DNA of 63,869 nt, filler included, from Dimorphilus gyrociliatus (GCA_904063045.1; 4 parts of 4 records of this genome joined end to end with filler, not necessarily neighbours in it); one strand, 5' to 3'. Positions 46,441 to 56,977 are shown, counted from the whole stretch's first letter. The notes: generated from the letters alone by a model not told the origin. Translations and numbers: made by a program.

Positions 46441-49400
46441 TTTACTCCTCCTGCCGATCCTGTGTGTGTGTGTGTGCCTGTTTCGGACAACAACTCTCCC
46501 ATCTCCGTTCCCGTCACCTCTACACCTGTCTCGCGTGTTATGGACATATACCGGTTCTCCCTCCCCTCTTCTACCTCTACTACCTCTACTACTACTACCA
46601 CTGCTACTACGGCTGCATCTTCTTCCTCTTCGGTTCTGGTGCCCCCTCTGCCGTCCTCTCTTCCTCTTCTGCTACTGCTGATCCGGTTTCGTCGAGGGTG
46701 AGTACGGCTGTTCCTGGCGGTCATGTTTCTGTGTCTGTCCCTCCTTCTCGTCCCCCGTCCAAGTCCCGTCCCGCCCCATCTGTTGTTACTGTTGCTGTCC
46801 CTGTACCTGACCGTTCCCCTATCTATACTCGTTCCCTCGCGGCCAAGAAGAAGAAGGCTGCTTCTTCTCCTGCACCCGCAATAGCCCCCATAAGGGTTGC
46901 TACGCAAACTTTTTACAACTCCGAACGGCGTCGTTCGGTTGGTGGTGCCTCTGCTGTTGTCGCCGCTGTTCCTCCCTCGTCCGCCATTGTACCTGTTGAT
47001 AATTCAAAATCATCCTGTGGGACTTCGGTTAGCGTGGCCGGTACTCCGGTTAACGCTCCCACAGATAGGCCTCAGCCAACCGCTAATCCCTCCGCTGCCC
47101 CTGTCTGTGAGAAGAATCTTTCTCCCACGAGTAGGCCTGCGCCGGCCCCCTGTCCTAATCAGGCAGCGGCTGACTCAGACCGTGTGACAATTCCTCCCAA
47201 CGCGCCTAGGCCTCCGCCGGTCGTTGCTTCTGTGTCCGCGCAATGTCCTTGCAAGGTGTCGCCCTGCGTGTGCATTTCCGGAGCTAATGTCTCCGCCGCG
47301 TCTCCTCCTACCGTTCCCCTTCTCCCTACCGACATCCCGTTAACCTATCCTCTTCTGGATAGAATGTGCCCTGTTTGCAACAACTTTTCCGGCACTACCA
47401 ACAGGATTTCAGCCCACATCCGCTCCGTCCACGCTAAGCAAGTGACCTTTATGTGTCGGGGCTGTCGCCATTTCTTCCGTTCACTGGGGATTGTGAAGAG
47501 ACATTTCAACCGCGATCATGGGGTCATCCCTCGTCCATCTATTTAGATGACTCGGACTCTCCTGCCGCTGCATCCCAGTCCCCCCCTTCCCAGCCCATTG
47601 TCCAACGCATCTCTGTTGGGCCTTCCCCCGCCACCATTCCCACTCTTCCCGCTCTGCCGAATGGCTCGTTTGCGAAAGTGGTCAAATCTCCCCCCCCGGC
47701 TCTTCCTTCCGCAAAGGCTCTCTTGCCGCTCGCCACTCTGCCGCCGTCGCCTTCTAAAAACAAAAATAATAGTAAGATCAGGAAACCCCGTCCCCGTAAG
47801 GTTATCTCCTCCTCAGCACTCGTCCCAAAAATACCCCCGGCCAGTGCGATCCCAGATTCGGGTTCGGTTGTTTCTTCCTCCTCTTCTAGGGCCACCCTTG
47901 CACGACCGACGGAGGCTGGGAAACCTCCTCCTAAAGTCGGTGCTCCGACCAAGACAGTTCGTTCCCCCCCAACTACAGGTCCGAACCCCTCTGCCCAAGC
48001 TCGGATTTCCCCTCCTAAAGAGCGGATTTCCCCGCCTAAAGGTCAGATTTCCCCGCCTAAAGTTAATAAGGGTTGAGCTCTCCGGACTCGGCCGCTGGTC
48101 CTGCCTCCGTGATGTCTCCCCCGCCTCCCCCGCGCCCTTCTTCCACAAGCCTAAGTCAACTTATCCGTGAAGAACGCGTCGCCTCTAATCCCTCCCCACC
48201 TAGGCCTACCCTTGCCCCCGGTATCGACTCGTCACCGGTGGCGCCCCTGGTGGTCCCCGATTCCCCCCCGCCGCCTTCGTGCGATACGGAGAGGGATGGT
48301 TCCTACGACGAGGACGCTGACATTATCCCCAGTTCTCTCGTCCCTTCTTCCTCTTCTCCCCCCCGCTTTCTTGTCCCCGCTCTCCCGCTCGAGATTGGTC
48401 TCCCCCTCCGCGGTTGGATCGGTCGGTGTCCCGTGACCACGAGGTTACTAATGATAATAATAATAACAGTCTCCTCCCCGACCCCCCGTCCCCTCCTCCT
48501 GCGCACGTGTCCCATCAACAGCTTGAACGGGAACGCGAGGAGCAACTTTCGGGTTTCGCTGCCGCTATCCTAACTGAGTTTGCCCCCAAGATTATTGGAA
48601 GTCAGTCCGAATGGTCCCGCGTGGAAGAAGTTTTCGACGCCTGGGTTCTCGCCATTTCCAACGCCAAGTCCAGGGTGCATGAGAGTGCTGGCGGTAGAGT
48701 CGCGAATAGGAACTTTGCTCGCCCCCTCCGAATGCGGCTAACAATCAATGGCAAGCGGCTACTAATATCCAAAGGGCCTACAAGCGTAATCCGGCTAGCA
48801 CTTTCCGCCGTATCGCTAACCCTGAGGAGACCAAGTGTTCCGCTTCCATTGAAGATATGACCTCTTTCTTTATTGAATCGGTCGCCCCTCCTCCTCCTTC
48901 ATATCAGTGGTCTCCCGACAGGAGTTTCTTCCGGCCGCGGCCCCACCGCCTGACCCAGAAGACGTTCAACTCGCCAATGAAATCCCCCCTGCTCTCACCC
49001 CCGATACCTTTAACTTCGAAAGCAGGGCCATCGACGGCATAGAATTGACCGACCCTAACCACCCCTTGCTCCGTCCCCCATCCCGCGCTGAGATTGTCGG
49101 CCAGCTTAAGCGAACCAACAACTCTGCTCCCGGTCTTGACGGCATCACCTACAAGGATCTTAAGAAATTCGATCCGAAAGGCTTAACCCTCAGGGCTTTC
49201 TATAGGTTGTTCTGGCGACATGGACAGATTCCCTCCTGTCTGAAGCGGTCTCGCACTATAATGATCCCCAAAAAGGATCTCGACCCTTCGCTGCCGGCCA
49301 ACTGTAGGCCTATTGCCCTCCTCTCTACCATTTACAAACTTTTTAGTAGTCTGCTGGCCCGGCGTCTGAGTAGATGGGCCAGAGACAATGATATCCTTAG

Positions 49401-51878
49401 CAAGGAGCAAAGGGGATTTACTACGGCCCCCGGTGTCTTCGAGCATAACTTCGCCTTGACCTCGGCCCTTGACGAGGCCAAACGTAGTGATAAACGCATC
49501 TGCCTAGGATTCGTCGATATTGCGCAAGCCTTCCCCTCTATCCCCCATTGCGTTATCTTCGACATGTTGTCCCTTGTAGGAGTGCCGCCCAGTCTCGTTA
49601 ACCTTATCCGGAATGTATATACCAACGCCACTACGGAGGTTATCACGACGGAAGGATGCACAGCACCCATTTCCATCCACAAAGGTGTTAGGCAGGGCGA
49701 CGGTCTCAGCCCCTTCCTCTTTAATCTCTGCTTTGAGGGAGCTCTACGTAGCGTTAACGCCTCAAAAGACAGAGATGGGTTCAAGATCGCCGCTCAGGCG
49801 GCTGTCCTAGGTCTAAGGTCCGTATCCATTTGCGGTCTAGCCTATGCCGATGACCTTGTGGTGGTCGCAAACTCTCGCCGTGGTCTGCAACACCTCCTCA
49901 ATGTTGCCGAGCGGTCGGCGGGTCTGGCAAACCTAAAATTTGCTCCGCGTAAATGCGCTACCTTGTGCCTCCATCGTGGAGTCGCCGACCCGACCCCCCT
50001 ATTCGTGGCTAACGAACCTATTAAGGCGCTAGGCCTTGAGGAGACCTACACCTATCTGGGCACGCCCATTGGCTTCAGGAAGGAGCTTCTCAAGGATGAT
50101 GGGGTGATTGAGAGGATCCGCTCCCTTCTTCGGCTTACTATGGAGTCCAACCTCGCGCCCTGGCAAAAGGTGTCCTCCATCAAGGCCTTCATTCTCCCCC
50201 GTATTCAATTCGCACTGCGAACCCACCGTTTCCTTAAGGAGGAACTAGCGGACCTCGATTCGATGGTTATTCGCGCTATCCGCACCACCATGGCCACCAC
50301 AAACAACGCCGCTAGGTCGTTCTTTGCCGCTCCCGCTAAAATGGGCGGTGTAGGCCTAATCCCCACTAGGGTAGAGGTGGACATAGCCCGTGTGGGACAC
50401 ACTTTTCAACTCCTCAAATCGGAGGACCCTACCATCCGCTTTATCGCCTGCGCAACTCTTGTTAAGGCCGCTAAGGCCAGAGTGGCCCGCGGCACCGCTC
50501 TTACAGGGGACGTTTTGGCCTCTTACCTCAACGGGTCAACGACTCCTCCTTTCTCCTCTTCCTCCTCTTCCGCTCAGACGGTGATGTCAGTCACTAGGTC
50601 GGCCTCCAGGCGCTTGCACAAATCTATAAACCTTGAATGGCACCTTGATGACGCCCTTACGCCTACCATTACCGCCACGGTGAGTAGGAGTTGGCACCAG
50701 AACCAGCCGCAATTTCGCCACGAGGTCCAATCCAACTGGCAGGAATTGTCGTTTGGGGATGACGAACGCAACCTCGAACCCCTAGCTATCCGTATCCGTC
50801 GCACCCACGAACCTTTCCCATTACTTAGGTCGGCGGTCACGGAGCTCAATGTTAGAGAGTTCGCTAAATTGGCGGAGCAGGGCAGGTCCTTCCAGGACAC
50901 CTGCTTGCACCCTGTCTCCAACCATTTCCTTTACACCGGCTTCGGCTTGCGGTATAAGGACTACCGATTCATCTTTCGGGCTCGGCTGGGTCTTCTCCAG
51001 ACCAATGCCGTCAAGTCCAGATACAGTGCCCGGGTTAGGCCTGATTGCAGGCGGTGCCACTTCCAAGTGGAATCAGTGCGGCATGTTCTAAACAACTGCC
51101 GTACTGGGTATGGCCTGTACGGTGATCGACATAACGCCATCCAGGATCGTCTGGTCAAAGGTGCCCGCCTGGCGCCCGGTTCCACCATTACGGTAAACAG
51201 GACGTTGCCCGAATCCTCCACTGCCCTTCGCCCTGACATAGTGATTAGGTGCGCGGATGACAGGGTGGTGCTGATCGACGTCACGGTCCCCTTTGAGAGG
51301 CCTGGCGCCCTTGCTCGCGCTGCCCAGGAGAAGATCAACAAGTATGCGGTCCTAAAAACTGAGCTGGAGGGACAAGGCAAGGCAGTAGAGATTCTACCAT
51401 TTGCTGTTGGTTCTTTGGGCGCCTGGTGCAGGGGGAACTCCAAGGTCTTTCGGGCTCTGGGCATAGCGTTCGCTTACCGGGGTATGCTGTCCCAGCTGTG
51501 CGTGGCGGAAGCGATTCGTGGCTCAAAGGACGCCTACGACGCGCACATTAACGGTCATTAAAATAAAAATGTACTGGCTATCAACTGTTTATTCGTTTTT
51601 TCGTCTGTTATGTGTCTGTGATATGTTAAGGGTGTCGTAAATTATTGTAAAGTGCCTGTGTCACTGGGATTTACCCCTTTTCCCTTGCTTCTACATCAAT
51701 CCTATTCTGCTATTTGTTCTCATGTGCCGGTTCCTGTTGGTCCACATTGGCCTTTAACTCCTGTCGTCTATGTCACTTATACCCCTCTTTTTTGTTTACC
51801 TAACTCCCTCTATGCCATTCATCCTGCAATTGAAAAACACTGTCTCCTCCTTTTACCTGTATAATACATTTAAATAAC
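46441..51878 (+). mobile_element. Utopia/NeSL-clade REL non-LTR retrotransposon, copy 1 (unspliced; 5' end in the gap)
   Basis: Two C2H2 fingers (CPVC..HIRSVH and CRGC..HFNRDH, 47367-47520) and a Ser/Pro-rich N-terminus, then RT and REL (next feature) and a ~317-nt 3' UTR. LAPWQKV..KAFILP, YRFIFRARL, IDVTVPFE and the terminal SKDAYDAHINGH resemble Utopia proteins. Confidence 0.9.
48907..51561 (+). CDS. Reverse transcriptase + CCHC + restriction-like endonuclease (C-terminal 884 aa of the element ORF)
   Basis: SAPGLDG, RPIALL, GVRQGDGLSPFLF, YADD, YTYLG, CRRC..ESVRHVLNNC, RHN, RPDIV..D..KINKY. Confidence 0.95.
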   Translation: MVSRQEFLPAAAPPPDPEDVQLANEIPPALTPDTFNFESRAIDGIELTDPNHPLLRPPSRAEIVGQLKRTNNSAPGLDGITYKDLKKFDPKGLTLRAFYRLFWRHGQIPSCLKRSRTIMIPKKDLDPSLPANCRPIALLSTIYKLFSSLLARRLSRWARDNDILSKEQRGFTTAPGVFEHNFALTSALDEAKRSDKRICLGFVDIAQAFPSIPHCVIFDMLSLVGVPPSLVNLIRNVYTNATTEVITTEGCTAPISIHKGVRQGDGLSPFLFNLCFEGALRSVNASKDRDGFKIAAQAAVLGLRSVSICGLAYADDLVVVANSRRGLQHLLNVAERSAGLANLKFAPRKCATLCLHRGVADPTPLFVANEPIKALGLEETYTYLGTPIGFRKELLKDDGVIERIRSLLRLTMESNLAPWQKVSSIKAFILPRIQFALRTHRFLKEELADLDSMVIRAIRTTMATTNNAARSFFAAPAKMGGVGLIPTRVEVDIARVGHTFQLLKSEDPTIRFIACATLVKAAKARVARGTALTGDVLASYLNGSTTPPFSSSSSSAQTVMSVTRSASRRLHKSINLEWHLDDALTPTITATVSRSWHQNQPQFRHEVQSNWQELSFGDDERNLEPLAIRIRRTHEPFPLLRSAVTELNVREFAKLAEQGRSFQDTCLHPVSNHFLYTGFGLRYKDYRFIFRARLGLLQTNAVKSRYSARVRPDCRRCHFQVESVRHVLNNCRTGYGLYGDRHNAIQDRLVKGARLAPGSTITVNRTLPESSTALRPDIVIRCADDRVVLIDVTVPFERPGALARAAQEKINKYAVLKTELEGQGKAVEILPFAVGSLGAWCRGNSKVFRALGIAFAYRGMLSQLCVAEAIRGSKDAYDAHINGH

Positions 51879-51898
51879 TCTGTTCTAGTTAGTTTAAT
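51879..51898 (+). other. U2 snRNA-like 20-mer at the unit junction (repeated at 53706-53725)
   Basis: TCTGTTCTAGTTAGTTTAAT vs U2 nt 39-58 TCTGTTCTTATCAGTTTAAT (recalled from memory): 17/20 identical. Confidence 0.65.
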
Positions 51899-53705
51899 CG
51901 CTAGCTGGCAATCCATTGGGTTGCCTTAATAACGATTACGGGATTTTTGTGTGGTCTGGGTTCCTAGAAGCTTGCTTCAAAGAATCCTGGGTTGACTTGG
52001 TCTAGCAGTACCTCCAAGTTCGGCCCTTCTTCTCAATGGAGAAGGCCTCACTTAAGACCTCCAAGGTGGAACAGTTACAAAACAGCCCTTTTCAGGGCTA
52101 CCGGAGGAGCAGATGACGATGGGCAGGGCTGTACAAAGTAACGACGGCTCCTCTCTATCTGAGCTCATGGACAAGTCTCCTGTTCGACGTGAGACGAGAT
52201 GGAAGACGCGGCAAAGCAGGATGCGGGCTCTTTAGCTAGCGTCCCCGCGGAACACAACGGCCTGGACTTTGGTCCGGCAGTGGGCGCTGCAGAGGACGAG
52301 GATGCTGGATACATGGCGGATATGTTATGTGCGGCTGATGTGCGGCTGGCCTCTCAAGAACGTCTTCTCTGCCTTCCCGCGGCCCGACGCTCCTTCCCTC
52401 CTCGTTCTTTGTTTATTCCCCTGCCGATCCTGTGTGTGTGTGTGTGCCTGTTTCGGATAACCTCTCTAACTCTCCCATCTCCGTTCCCGTCACCTCTACA
52501 CCTGTCTCGCGTGTTATGGACATTACCGGTTCTCCCTCCCCCTCTTCTACCTCTACTACCTCTACTACCACTGCTACTACGGCTGCATCTTCTTCCTCTT
52601 CGGTTCTGGATGCCCCCTCTGCCGTCCTCTCTTCCTCTTCTTCTACTGCTGATCCGGTTTCGTTGAGGGTCGGCGGTCACGGAGCTCAATGTAAGAGAGT
52701 TCGCTAAATTGGCGGAGCAGGGCAGGTCCTTTCAGGACACCTGCTTGCACCCTGTCTCCAACCATTTCCTCTACACCGGCTTCGGCTTGCGGTATAAGGA
52801 CTACCGATTCATCTTTCGGGCTCGGTTGGGTCTTCTCCAGATCAATGCAGTCAAGTCCAGATACAGTGCCCGGGTTAGGCCTGATTGCAGGCGTTGTCAC
52901 TTCCAAGTGGAATCAGTGCGGCATGTCCTAAACAACTGCCGTACTGGGTATGGCCTGTACGGTGATCGCCATAACGCCATCCAGGATCGTCTGGTCAAAG
53001 GTGCCCGCCTGGCGCCCGGTTCCACCATTACGGTAAACAGGGCGTTGCCCGAATCCTCCACTGCCCTTCGCCCTGATATAGTGATTAGGAGCGCGGATGA
53101 CAGGGTGGTGCTGATCGACGTCACGGTCCCCTTTGAAAGGCCTGGCGCCCTTGCTCGCGCTGCCCAGGAGAAGATCAACAAGTATGCGGTCTTGAAAACG
53201 GAGCTGGAGGGACAAGACAAGGCAGTAGAGATTCTACCATTTGCTGTTGGTTCTTTGGGCGCCTGGTGCAGGGGGAACTCCAAGGTCTTTCGGGCTCTGG
53301 GCATAGCGTTCGCCTACCGGGGTATGCTGTCCCAGCTGTGCGTGGCGGAAGCGATTCGTGGCTCAAAGGACGCCTACGACGCGCACATTAACGGTCATTA
53401 AAATTACTGGCTATTAATTGTTTATTCGTTCGTTATGTGTCTGTGATATATTAAGGGTGTCGTAAATTATTGTAAAGTGCCTCTGTCACTGGGATTTACC
53501 CCTTTTCCCTTGCTTCCATACTATTTCCTAATTCTGCTATTTGTTACTCATGTGCCGGTTCCTGTTGGTCCACATTGGCCTTTAACTCCTGTCGTCTATG
53601 TCACTTTTACCCCTTCTTTTTGTTTACCTAACTTCCTCTATGCATTCATCCTGCATTTGAAAAACACTGTCTCCTCCTTTTACCTGTATAATACATTTAA
53701 ATAAC
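51879..53705 (+). mobile_element. Utopia-like copy 2: complete 5' and 3' ends, lacking the 4131 nt equivalent to 46698-50828 (spliced form)
   Basis: 5' UTR/ORF start (ATG 52036), junction gagg|gtcggcgg at 52668/52669, REL region 52709-53401, 3' UTR. Confidence 0.9.
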
Positions 53706-56700
53706 TCTGTTCTAGTTAGTTTAATCGCTAGCTGGCAATCCATTGGGTTGCCTTAATAACGATTACGGGATTTTTGTGTGGTCTGGGTTCCTAGAAGCTT
53801 GCTTCGAAGAATCCTTGGGTTGACTTGGTCTAGCAGTACCTCCAAGTTCGGCCTTCTTCTCAATGGAGAAGGCCTCACTTAAGACCTCCCAAGGTGGAAC
53901 AGTTACAAAACAGCCCTTTTCAGGGCTACCGGAGGAGCAGATGACGATGGGTAGGGCTGTACAAAGTAACGACGGCTCCACTCTATCTGAGCTCATGGAC
54001 AAGTCTCCTGTTCGGCGTGATGACGAGATGGAAGACGCGGCAAAGCAGGATGCGGGCTCTTTAGCTAGCGTCCCGCGGAAGACAACGGCCTGGACTTTGG
54101 TCCGGCAGTGGGCGCTGCAGAGGACGAGGATGCTGGATACATGGCGGATATGTTATGTGCGGCTGATGTGCGGCTGGCCTCTCAAGAACGTCTTCTCTGC
54201 CTTCCCGCGGCCGACGCTCCTTCCTCCTCGTTCTTTGTTTATTCCCCTGCCGATCCTGTGTGTGTGTGTGTGCCTGTTTCGGATATCCTCTCTAACTCTC
54301 CATCTCCGTTCCCGTCACCTCTACACCTGTCTCGCGTGTTATGGACATTACCGGTTCTCCCTCCCCTCTTCTACCTCTACTACCTCTACTACCACTGCTA
54401 CTACGGCTGCATCTTCTTCCTCTTCGGTTCTGGGTGCCCGCTCTGCGTCCTCTCTTCTCTTCTTCTACTGCTGATCCGGTTTCGTTGAGGTCTCCTCACT
54501 GACCCCTCGTCCCCTCCCCTGCGCACGTGTCCCATCAACAGCTTGAACGCGAACGCGAGGAGCAACTTTCGAGTTTCGCTGCCGCTATCCTAACTGAGTT
54601 TGCCCCCAAGATTATTGGAAGTCAGTCCGAATGGTCCGCGGTAGAAGAAGTTTTCGACGCCTGGGTTCTCGCCATCTCCAACGCCAAGTCCAGGGTGCAT
54701 GAGGGTACTGGTAATAGATTCGCGAATAGGAACTTTGCTCGCCCCCTCCGAATGCGGCTAACAATCAATGGCAAGCGGCTACTAATATCCAAAGGGCCTA
54801 CAAGCGTAATCCGGCTAGCACTTTCCGCCGTATCGCTAACCCTGAGGAGACCAAGTGTTCTGCTTCCATTGAAGATATGACCTCTTTCTTTATCGAATCG
54901 GTCGCCACCTCCTCCTTCATATCAGTGGTCTCCCGATAGGGAGTTTCTTCCGGCCGCGGCCCCACCGCCTGACCCAGAGGACGTTCAACTCGCCAATGAA
55001 ATCCCCCTGCTTTCACCCCGATACCTTTAACCGAAAGTAGGACCATCGACGGCATAGAATTGACCGACCCTAATCACCCCTTGCTCCGTCCCCCATCCCG
55101 CGCTGAGATTGTTGGCCAGCTTAAGCGAACCAACAACTCTGCTCCCGGTCTTGACGGCATCACCTACAAGGATCTTAAGAAATTCGATCCGAAAGGCTTA
55201 ACCCTCAGGGCTTTTTACAGGTTGTTCTGGCGACATGGACAGATTCCCTCCTGTCTGAAGCGGTCTCGCACTATAATGATCCCAAAAAGGATCTCGACCC
55301 TTCGCTGCCGGCCAACTGTAGGCCTATTGCCCTCCTCTCTACCATCTACAAACTTTTTAGTAGTCTGCTGGCCCGGCGTCTGAGTAGATGGGCCAGAGAC
55401 AATGATATCCTTAGCAAGGAGCAAAGGGGTTTACTACGGCCCCCGGTGTCTTCGAGCACAACTTTGCCTTGACCTCGGCGCTTGACGAGGCCAAACGTAG
55501 TGATAAGCGCATCTGCCTCGGATTCGTTGATATTGCGCAAGCCTTCCCTCTATCCCCCATTGCGTTATCTTCGACATGTTGTCCCCGTAGGAGTGCCGCC
55601 CAGTCTCGTTAACCTTATCCGGAACGTATACACCAACGCCACTACGGAGGTTATCACGACGGAAGGTTGCACAGCACCCATTTCCATCCACAAAGGTGTT
55701 AGGCAGGGCGACGGTCTCAGCCCCTTCCTCTTTAATCTCTGCTTTGAGGGAGCTCTACGTAGTGTTAACGCCTCCAAAGACAGAGATGGGTTCAAGATCG
55801 CCGCCAGGCGGCTGTCCTTGGCCTAAGGTCCGTATCCATTTGCGGCTAGCCTATGCCGATGACCTTGTGGTGGTCGCAAACTCCGCCGTGGTCTGCAACA
55901 CCTCCTCAATGTTGCCGAGCGGTCGGCTGGTCTGGCAAACCTAAAATTTGCTCCGCGTAAATGCGCTACCTTGTGCCTCCATCGTGGAGTCGCCGACCCG
56001 ACCCCCCTATTCGTGGCTAACGAACCTATTAAGGCGCTAGGCCTTGAGGAGACCTACACCTATCTGGGCACGCCCATTGGCTTTAGGAAGGAGCTTCTCA
56101 AGGATGATGGGGTGATTGAGAGGATCCGCTCCCTTCTTCGGCTTACTATGGAGTCCAACCTCGCGCCCTGGCAAAAGGTGTCCTCCATCAAGGCCTTCAT
56201 TCTCCCCGTATTCAGTTCGCACTGCGAACCCACCGTTTCCTTAAGGAGGAACTAGCGGACCTCGATTCGGTGGTTATTCGCGCTATTCGTACCGCCATAG
56301 CCACCACAAACAACGCCGCTAGGTCGTTCTTTGCCGCTCCCGCTAAAATGGGCGGTGTCGGCCTAATCCCCACTAGGGTAGAGGTTGACATAGCCCGTGT
56401 AGGACATACTTTTCAACTCCTTAAATCGGAGGACCCTACCATCCGCTTTATCGCCTGCGCAACTCTCGTTAAGGCCGCTAAGGCCAGAGTGGCTGCGGCA
56501 CCGCTCTTACAGGTGTTGTTTTGGCCTCTTACCTTAATGGGTCAACGACTCCTCCTTTCTCCTCTTCCTCCTCTTCCGCTCAGACGGTGATGTCAGTCAC
56601 TAGGTCGGCTTCCAGGCGCTTGCATAAATCCATAAATCTTGAATGGCACCTCGATGACGCCCTTACGCCTACCATTACCGCCACGGTGAGTAGGAGTTGG

Positions 56701-56977
56701 CACCAAAACCAGCCGCAATTTCGCCACGAGGTCCAATCCAACTGGCAGGAATTGTCGTTTGGGGATGATGAACGCAACCTTGAACCCTTAGCTATCCGTA
56801 TCCGTCGCACCCACGAACCTTTCCCATTACTTAGGTCGGCGGTTACGGAGCTCAGTGTAAGAGAGTTCGTTAAATTGGCGGAGCAGGGCAGGTCCTTTCA
56901 GGACACCTGCTTGCACCCTGTCTCCAACCATTTCTCTACACCGGCTTCGGCTTGCGGTATAAGGACTATCGATTCAT
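53706..56977 (+). mobile_element. Utopia-like copy 3: lacks the 1772 nt equivalent to 46698-48469 (spliced form); 3' end in the gap; many 1-bp indels
   Basis: ATG 53863, junction gagg|tctcctc at 54490/54491, RT motifs in shifting frames 55060-56977. Confidence 0.9.

Follow-up and report, generated by a model that had tools for sequence, protein, structure and literature searches.

The stretch of DNA analysed, here called the window, comprises 63,869 nt, filler included, from the small annelid Dimorphilus gyrociliatus, for which both DNA and RNA data are public, and was compared with the public assembly GCA_904063045.1; about 31 kb of the genome were covered in all. The piece starting at position 46441 contains three copies, all on the (+) strand, of one non-LTR retrotransposon that targets U2 genes, the third copy reaching position 56977. 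Compared with the public assembly, the contig in the window lacks 33 single bases. The order of copy 1 before copy 2 was seen in the window's contig only and is not present in the public assembly.

Copy 1 is cut by the start of the piece and begins with the final 257 nt (46441..46697, +) of a 212-codon N-terminal open reading frame, here called exon 1, which match L004 10379-10636 without substitutions. Downstream follow two C2H2 fingers (C-x2-C-x12-H-x4-H, 47367-47432 and 47454-47519) recognized by motif reading, N-terminal fingers not being reported by Pfam at E≤0.01, and a reverse transcriptase (RT) domain (49264-50037, RVT_1 E 3.5e-29) with YADD at 49843. The C-terminal part (50829..51561, +) contains a CCHC knuckle (51046-51099) and a restriction-like endonuclease (EN; RPDIV at 51229, D..E..K), both identified by motif rather than profile, with the stop codon at 51559. 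The 3′UTR (51562..51878, +) ends with AAATAAC, has no poly(A) and abuts nt 39 of a U2 sequence. This element-type (E) U2 nt 39-end (51879..52033, +; Rfam U2 66.8 bits) makes up the 5′ end of copy 2, as revealed by alignment with the G-type U2. The N-terminal ORF of copy 2 (52036..52668, +), with its ATG 2 nt past the U2 end, is broken in the window by missing single bases and intact in the public assembly. The remainder of the copy (52669..53705, +) consists of the endonuclease region, with an ORF to 53401, and the 3′UTR (53402-53705). A second element-type U2 nt 39-end (53706..53861, +; Rfam U2 69.9 bits, same alignment) starts copy 3, followed by the N-terminal ORF (53863..54490, +) and a body (54491..56977, +) that includes the RT and the first part of the endonuclease before the piece ends; in the public assembly its frame is open for 1,031 codons. 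The 3′ junction AAATAAC|TCTGTTCTAG is found at both 51878/51879 and 53705/53706, each at an Rfam U2 match.

The element is best classed as a Utopia-type, U2-targeting, R2-like non-LTR retrotransposon, judged by the RVT_1 match, the best PDB matches (R2 proteins, E 1.7e-58), the CCHC/PD..D..K and C2H2 motifs, the U2 nt-39 junction and the relative L001, which also has a U2 nt-39 junction. The best relatives are ~35% identical and include Trichinella proteins with a Ulp1 protease domain. The features common to Utopia are the nt 39 junction, N-terminal fingers (one to three in Utopia, two here), and an RT followed by a zinc knuckle and a PD..(D/E)xK endonuclease. All searches were made with natural sequences, none of them joined, mended or turned into a consensus. 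Those with the RT and EN ORFs retrieved no protein relatives above 41% identity, tblastn with these relatives matched nothing upstream of 48979, and exact-pattern metagenome scans gave no match. No ribozyme was detected in the element.

The U2 target and growth of the array

An empty site is provided by an intact G-type U2 gene (L004 7927-8119) with both flanks common to the occupied units, from which it follows that the sequence between U2 nt 38 and G-type nt 39 is an insertion. The flanks in the U2 cluster are 97-100% identical. Each copy has its own U2 nt 39-end at the 5′ end, and this segment upstream of the ORF travels with the element, so that a complete U2 gene is rebuilt on insertion. 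The mobile unit is composed of its own U2 nt 39-end, a 2 nt gap and the ATG of one long ORF, and targets nt 38/39 of U2 snRNA genes, where the rebuilt upstream U2 can be struck again. The array thus grew by serial insertion into the rebuilt U2 gene, with copy 3 inserted first, then copy 2, and copy 1 last in the window's contig. An earlier note on this DNA had described a tandem array; the arrangement is not plainly head-to-tail, an element-borne U2 nt 39-end separating the units. A remnant of U2 nt 1-38 was also considered between the copies and rejected, the best match, CGTCTTCTCTGCCTT at 52361-52375, not being significant (p 0.3-0.5).

Junctions in the DNA and their coding consequences

Copies 2 and 3 each lack an internal segment of copy 1, and both missing segments start at the same sequence. 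In copy 1 direct reading revealed a 5′ splice donor, CGAGG|GTGAGT, at 46697/46698 (GTGAGT 46698..46703, +; context AGG|GTGAGTA) and two acceptors, AACAG|TCTCCTC at 48469/48470 (acceptor 1) and CCATTACTTAG|GTCGGCGG at 50828/50829 (acceptor 2). Just ahead of the donor the full-length copy carries the variant TCGAGG in place of TTGAGG. Copy 3 reads GAGG|TCTCCTC at 54490/54491 and lacks 1,772 nt (46698..48469, +), a coding segment with both C2H2 fingers inside. Copy 2 reads GAGG|GTCGGCGG at 52668/52669 and lacks 4,131 nt (46698..50828, +; 4,132 nt in the public assembly), a segment with the fingers and the RT domain inside that ends with CCTTTCCCATTACTTAG. Both segments end with AG. Collinear blocks in self-BLAST break at the junctions, 48469-50972 corresponding to 54490-56977 and 50828-52668 to 52668-54490. 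All of the coordinates given in the earlier note proved exact, as did the base-precise losses from one donor that it described and its statement that one form has lost the zinc fingers and the other the RT as well. Both junctions are also present in GCA_904063045.1 (L005 19756/19755 and 17924/17923).

Microhomology of 1 to 3 nt (G; GGT) at the junctions leaves a placement ambiguity of 1 nt for copy 3 and 3 nt for copy 2, and GT..AG is the only canonical placement. A generic donor matrix ranked the donor second of 285 GT sites, tied for best. For a deletion placed at random in copy 1, the probability of fitting GTRAGT..AG is 7e-5. The end of the shorter segment (48446..48469, +) contains a branch-site-like TACTAAT, one of only two TACTAAY motifs in copy 1, followed by an A/T-rich tract and CAG. 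The median intron of D. gyrociliatus is 66 bp and long introns are spliced inefficiently (PMC7854359). Two counterpoints are that the putative introns of 1.8 and 4.1 kb far exceed the norm of the species, and that acceptor 1, with 35% pyrimidines, is without a pyrimidine tract.

The reading frame of exon 1 was set by codon usage together with a natural intact ORF, that of protein P0126, which extends for 374 aa from its ATG and is continuous across the donor. The codon-usage score was significant in all 5′ segments and negative in the 3′UTR and U2 controls. Setting the frame by ORF length was rejected, the CT-rich region being open in all three frames. In the public assembly the N-terminal ORF has 212 codons and ends exactly at the donor in 3 of 3 copies, while both acceptors fall at codon position 3, in agreement with the donor phase 0 and acceptor phase 2 assigned previously. 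The ORF downstream of the boundary runs for 222 codons before any ATG of its own. In the shortened forms a stop codon is reached 3 or 12 codons past the junction, which bears out the proposal that both are frameshifted and encode the N-terminus only. The junction of copy 3 appeared in frame with the RT in the window, but only because a base is missing there; the public assembly has this base, and its junction is out of frame.

Origin of the shortened copies

Copies 2 and 3 are very probably spliced retrocopies, comparable to the SpIREs of LINE-1 (L1), in a new LINE clade. As in SpIREs, the internal deletions are bounded exactly by GT..AG at consensus-like sites, and the insertions have otherwise normal hallmarks of retrotransposition, namely the nt-39 3′ junction, a complete 5′ module and U2 flanks identical to the empty site. 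The element is R2/Utopia-like and not LINE-1, so the likeness is one of working. The shared strong donor and the two AG acceptors make reverse transcription of spliced RNA into the array, as the earlier note proposed, the best explanation of both deletions. We infer the RNA steps from these DNA features. In RNA of the element, probably co-transcribed from the U2 promoter, the strong donor behind codon 212 would occasionally be joined by splicing to either cryptic acceptor, 1,772 or ~4,131 nt downstream. The spliced RNAs would retain the 5′ module and 3′UTR and would be reverse-transcribed at the U2 target by the protein of full-length elements acting in trans. The predicted products code for no more than the N-terminal 212 aa and a further 3 or 12 codons out of frame, and copies 2 and 3 would be defective by-products, comparable to L1 SpIREs. 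The inefficient splicing of long introns in this species fits rare splicing beside mostly full-length RNA. No transcript-derived protein with either junction was found in the protein collections searched.

Copy 1 itself is not the parent of copies 2 and 3, contrary to what had been suggested. Between copies the RT/EN parts differ with dS 0.08-0.12 and dN/dS 0.06-0.17, the differences being mostly synonymous. For copies 2 and 3 compared with copy 1 the values are 0.09-0.12 and 0.06-0.09, pointing to other lineages. The RT-EN region of copy 3 differs from that of the full copy by 86 synonymous and 25 nonsynonymous changes (dN/dS 0.088), and the EN comparisons gave dN/dS 0.08-0.17. These low ratios indicate that the copies derive from separate, functionally constrained, active lineages, and in-situ tandem duplication followed by neutral decay was rejected on the same values (0.06-0.17). 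The 5′ module is far less diverged between copies than the bodies (dS 0.012-0.024, dN/dS ~1), so that within each copy the 5′ part has had a different history from the 3′ part.

A mosaic of this kind was not predicted by simple cis-splicing and lends itself to an alternative in which the reverse transcriptase switched templates during target-primed reverse transcription, from the RNA of a broken body to one that ends at 46697, or in which read-through splicing joined exon 1 to the body of the next copy. R2-type enzymes do make such jumps, and divergence changes from low to high right at the junction, as if the two halves came from different molecules. Gene conversion in the homogenised U2 cluster can explain the mosaic equally well, however, and a pure template jump would leave GT..AG, the branch-site-like TACTAAT and the repeated landing point unaccounted for, while splicing between copies would still be spliceosomal and is a sub-case of the main explanation. 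Overall, this alternative is improbable, though it fares better than those that follow.

Two independent deletions at the DNA level in full-length copies, by end joining, microhomology or replication slippage, are less probable again. The 1 to 3 nt of microhomology would suit such events, but the common GTRAGT breakpoint combined with two AG ends has a joint chance of ~1e-9, and because the copies belong to different lineages the same breakpoint would be needed independently in each.

Ordinary 5′-truncated insertions, common for R2-like elements, would make the donor part of an upstream target flank and the acceptors random truncation points. Copies that share their upstream sequence but start at different points are what 5′ truncation classically leaves, and the upstream module is more uniform than the bodies, as expected of host flanks. 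The upstream module nevertheless lies between U2 nt 38 and G-type nt 39 and is inserted DNA, and the ORF is in frame across the boundary in P0126, with the downstream ORF lacking an ATG for its first 222 codons. The chance that a full-length element starts at GTGAGT and that AG precedes both truncation points is about 1e-5 to 1e-6. Truncation at a shared target flank was rejected on the empty-site comparison and ORF continuity, and we regard it as very improbable. Least probable of all is an assembly artefact or contamination with cDNA. The contig in the window does have many errors, and its order of copies 1 and 2 is at odds with the public assembly, but the junctions recur with identical bases in a polished public contig of 596 kb, amid normal genes, although the assemblies may share raw data, and the copies have precise U2 nt-39 ends with genomic flanks and no poly(A) or adaptor traces.

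The spliced-retrocopy explanation might be extended to a target-repairing element, in which each insertion restores a functional U2 gene by means of the element's structurally conserved U2 nt 39-end, the U2 promoter yields a U2-led co-transcript, the rebuilt gene becomes the next landing site, and the two isoforms, encoding the 212-aa N-terminal protein only, are made regularly, perhaps with a regulatory role, and not by accident. Taken jointly, these propositions are speculative and more likely wrong than right.

Comparison with known systems

Spliced retrocopies have until now been described mainly for mammalian L1 elements. In human LINE-1 SpIREs the L1 donor at position 97 is joined to position 622, 790 or 976, and forms that lose coding sequence need protein in trans and have no evolutionary future (Larson et al. 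2018, PMC5860796). The copies described here resemble SpIREs in having internal deletions at donor and acceptor sites, one donor with several acceptors, and otherwise normal insertions; the L1 sites are functional, whereas those here are read from DNA. Unlike L1, the element is R2/NeSL/Utopia-like: it inserts at a specific site, has one ORF and a restriction-like endonuclease, and lacks poly(A). What is excised is entirely coding sequence, with loss of the fingers or of the fingers and RT, and the copies form a serial array in one U2 gene. Beyond mammalian L1, the phenomenon would thus reach a distant LINE of an annelid, one with a restriction-like endonuclease and site-specific insertion, and LINE replication in general may leak, or be filtered by the host, through spliceosomal processing. 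The earlier note had raised host restriction or self-regulation of the element as possible roles of the splicing. The literature searched contained no report of spliced retrocopies for REL-endonuclease or Utopia elements, in line with the earlier note.

The element shares with Utopia (Kojima & Jurka 2015, PMC4640811) the 3′ junction at U2 nt 39, the fingers, RT, C-terminal finger and RLE, and arrays in U2 clusters. In Phytophthora, intact U2 genes rather than 1-38 fragments lie upstream of Utopia, for which target deletion or recombination was proposed; no spliced derivatives are described (PMC4640811). Unlike that account, the empty site and the G and E types of U2 show that the U2 nt 39-end is element-borne. 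This clean comparison of empty and filled sites, in which a Utopia element carries part of its target gene and restores the target on insertion, bears on the question left open in the original paper of why intact U2 genes lie upstream of the elements.

R2 is the closest system by solved structures. It is likewise a site-specific RLE LINE without a promoter of its own, co-transcribed with its target gene, as is probable here, and with target RNA flanks that aid the junctions. That forms without fingers, or without fingers and RT, inserted precisely at U2 nt 38/39 implies that the determinant directing the RNA lies in the retained parts: the 5′ module, the 3′UTR and the U2 sequence. In R2 a self-cleaving ribozyme frees the RNA and the occupied 28S unit is inactivated, whereas in the present element no ribozyme was found and the target is rebuilt. 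Target repair is a concrete mechanism by which a low-copy essential gene tolerates a specific parasite.

Probable splice junctions and reading frames

The donor and acceptor coordinates of the earlier note all proved exact upon re-reading of the piece CAJFCJ010000272.1 (window 46441-56977) and extraction of the sequence contexts. In copy 1 of the three Utopia-type, U2-targeting retrotransposon copies, the donor CGAGG/GTGAGT is located at 46697/46698, acceptor 1 (...TACTAATGATAATAATAATAACAG/TCTCC) at 48469/48470 and acceptor 2 (CCTTTCCCATTACTTAG/GTCGG) at 50828/50829. Copy 2 reads GAGG/GTCGGCGG at 52668/52669, joining the donor to acceptor 2, and copy 3 reads GAGG/TCTCCTC at 54490/54491, joining it to acceptor 1. 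Self-BLAST yielded collinear matches that break exactly at the junctions, confirming the claimed absence of 4,131 nt from copy 2 and 1,772 nt from copy 3. Placement is ambiguous by 3 nt in copy 2 and 1 nt in copy 3, with a single GT..AG placement for each. The donor tied for best among the 285 GT sites of copy 1 with a generic donor matrix. The probability that a random deletion in copy 1 can be written as GTRAGT..AG was 7e-5, and the joint chance fell to ~1e-9 once a second deletion with the same donor and an AG end was added. A TACTAAT motif lies 24-18 nt upstream of acceptor 1, where a pyrimidine tract is absent; acceptor 2 is preceded by a tract of 70% pyrimidine. A second consensus donor, ACG/GTGAGT, is found 149 nt upstream of acceptor 2 and delimits a would-be short intron (50680-50828) of species-typical size that is frame-shifting and unspliced in all copies seen.

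The piece was compared with ~31 kb of the public assembly GCA_904063045.1 (stretches L004 and L005) using natural copies exclusively, in place of consensus, mended or artificially exon-joined ones. Copy 1 corresponds to the unspliced full copy at L004 10379-15817, from which it differs by eight 1-nt indels and 0 substitutions. The counterpart of window 51879-56977 is L005 20549-15419 on the minus strand; the two differ by one substitution and by 33 single bases within 5.1 kb, most of them C, that the window lacks. This substitution-poor, indel-rich match indicates that the piece belongs to the same species and that its contig is rich in errors; most of its frameshifts are evidently consensus errors rather than decay. 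The public contig contains both junctions as well (L005 19756/19755 and 17924/17923), which is not fully independent confirmation since the two assemblies may share raw reads.

In the cleaner public assembly, the full copy, copy 2 and copy 3 each have an ORF that starts with an ATG 2 nt past the U2 3' end and reaches the donor, in phase 0, after 212 codons. The ORF of the full copy passes the donor in frame into the finger region. A natural ORF of this kind is the 374-aa P0126, a protein recorded for Dimorphilus gyrociliatus, the species to which PMC10212961 assigns GCA_904063045.1. It is encoded on contig CAJFCJ010000029.1 of that assembly, and a 69-aa peptide translated from the sequence immediately following the second U2 fragment matched it at 97% identity. 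After the junction the frame continues for 12 codons in copy 2 and three codons in copy 3 before a stop. Further on, copy 2 has an open endonuclease frame of 244 codons and copy 3 an open RT-EN frame of 1,031 codons, both in the -1 frame relative to the 212-codon exon 1. Thus, the phases claimed in the earlier note hold. An apparent in-frame continuation of copy 3 past the junction was specific to the window and due to one base absent from it.

Element identity and U2 target

Rfam searches placed the 3' part of U2 snRNA, from nt 39 (TCTGTTCT), directly after each 3'UTR, a junction that defines Utopia elements (PMC4640811). The long ORF contains an RVT_1 domain, with R2 proteins the best solved relatives (E 1.7e-58), and the element carries YADD, CCHC and two N-terminal C2H2 motifs and the endonuclease motif RPDIV...D..E..K. 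The nearest proteins in public collections were only about 35% identical, and one of the nearest relatives, L001, has the same U2 nt-39 junction. A hairpin, AAAACAGCCCTTTTCAGGGCTACC, identical in both units (window 52079-52102 and 53907-53930), lies ~45 nt past the U2 3' end within the N-terminal ORF; with a 6-bp stem, a UUUC loop and an ACC tail, it is very similar to the stem-loop at the 3' end of histone mRNAs and scored 18.9 bits for Rfam Histone3, under the threshold of 34. The same ORF contains a short (TG)n microsatellite, reading CVCV, at window 46461-46476, 52430-52447 and 54258-54273.

Two U2 sequence types, G and E, were distinguished. Near-identical E-type U2 nt 39-end segments (window 51879-52033 and 53706-53861; L004 9804-9998; L005 20588-20394 and 18749-18562) precede copies 2 and 3 as well as the full copy; the E type differs by ~20% from the genomic G type and keeps the U2 fold. 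The segments trailing the full copy and copy 3 are G type and match exactly both the intact gene and the flank downstream of it. The E type ahead of the copies and the G type behind indicate a mobile unit composed of E-type U2 39-end followed by the ATG, ORF and 3'UTR. Insertion of such a unit at nt 38/39 rebuilds a complete chimeric U2 upstream under the native promoter and leaves a G-type 39-end fragment downstream. The chimeric U2 scored 140 bits, with compensatory changes that keep the stems. The array order, G-type 1-38, E, copy 2, E, copy 3, G-type 39-end, is consistent with one insertion after another into the rebuilt gene at the head. This agrees with a remark by Kojima and Jurka that Phytophthora Utopia elements have intact U2 genes rather than 1-38 fragments on their upstream side (PMC4640811).

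Only in the window does copy 1 precede copy 2, joined exactly at U2 nt 39 (51878/51879). At this point (L005 20549-20588) the public assembly carries U2 nt 1-38 with the promoter, and its full copy lies ~15 kb away in opposite orientation. Either the full-length copy inserted here very recently and is polymorphic, with 0 substitutions over 5.4 kb, or the contig is misjoined. In a fourth U2 repeat unit (L005 9280-10656), U2 is absent and the promoter flank (97%) leads into a remnant, 411 nt long, of the element 5' module (91%). The gene model P0127 (L005 10001-10765, 'unnamed protein product') begins in this flank and enters the remnant; P0126, too, is only part of the element ORF.

Origin of the copies

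Compared with the full copy, copy 3 showed 86 synonymous and 25 nonsynonymous differences in RT-EN (dS 0.123, dN/dS 0.088), and dN/dS of the endonuclease region was 0.084 for copy 2 against the full copy and 0.17 for copy 2 against copy 3. Overall, the RT-EN bodies downstream of the junctions had dS of 0.08-0.12 and dN/dS of 0.06-0.17. Since in-frame dN/dS was 0.084-0.17 as opposed to 1.1-2.8 in out-of-frame controls, the body differences arose before insertion, in functional lineages. This divergence refutes the claim that copy 2 or copy 3 was derived from copy 1 and rules out in-situ duplication; the two are independent insertions.

The 5' module (E-type U2 and 212 codons) differs by merely 1.3-1.7% between copies (dS 0.012-0.024, dN/dS about 1), with 2-4 synonymous differences where 12-19 are expected at the dS of the bodies (Poisson p 4e-5 to 5e-4). 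Low divergence in window 52036-52668 and 53863-54490 gives way to high divergence in the bodies at the splice junctions. The most economical reading of this mosaic is gene conversion within a homogenised U2 cluster, the flanks of which are 97-100% identical; a conversion tract would end where homology to the full copy ends. Alternatively, read-through transcripts may have been spliced between neighbouring copies. Under either reading, gene conversion or inter-copy splicing, the junctions would still be spliceosomal in origin.

In R2-like elements, copies that share an upstream boundary but begin at different points are usually the result of 5' truncation at the target site. Three results exclude this explanation here. 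The first is an empty site, an intact G-type U2 (L004 7927-8119, 159 bits) recognized as such because both flanks match those of the two occupied units, in which all sequence between nt 38 and G-type nt 39, including that upstream of the junctions, is insertion. Second, the ORF is in frame across the boundary, and the first 222 codons of the downstream frame contain no ATG. Third, a codon-usage score trained on the finger and RT-EN regions was significantly positive for all 5' segments (p 0.000-0.007, with 0.08 for a single short one) and negative for 3'UTRs, the U2 fragment and reverse strands, except one reverse-strand, low-complexity exon 1 segment.

Proposed pathway and known cases

Transcription would start at the U2 promoter and proceed through the rebuilt U2 into the ORF, and the strong donor would on rare occasions be spliced to one of two cryptic acceptors. 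The median intron of Dimorphilus gyrociliatus is 66 bp and long introns are spliced poorly (PMC7854359). Element protein supplied in trans could then bind the retained 3'UTR and carry out target-primed reverse transcription at U2 nt 38/39, with the 5' end presumably joined within U2 1-38.

Spliced retrocopies of REL-endonuclease or Utopia elements did not turn up in the papers searched, an absence that is not proof of novelty. The closest known case is the spliced integrated retrotransposed element (SpIRE) of LINE-1, in which one donor is used with several acceptors and trans complementation is needed (PMC5860796). The present copies share this logic. The clade and target biology differ.
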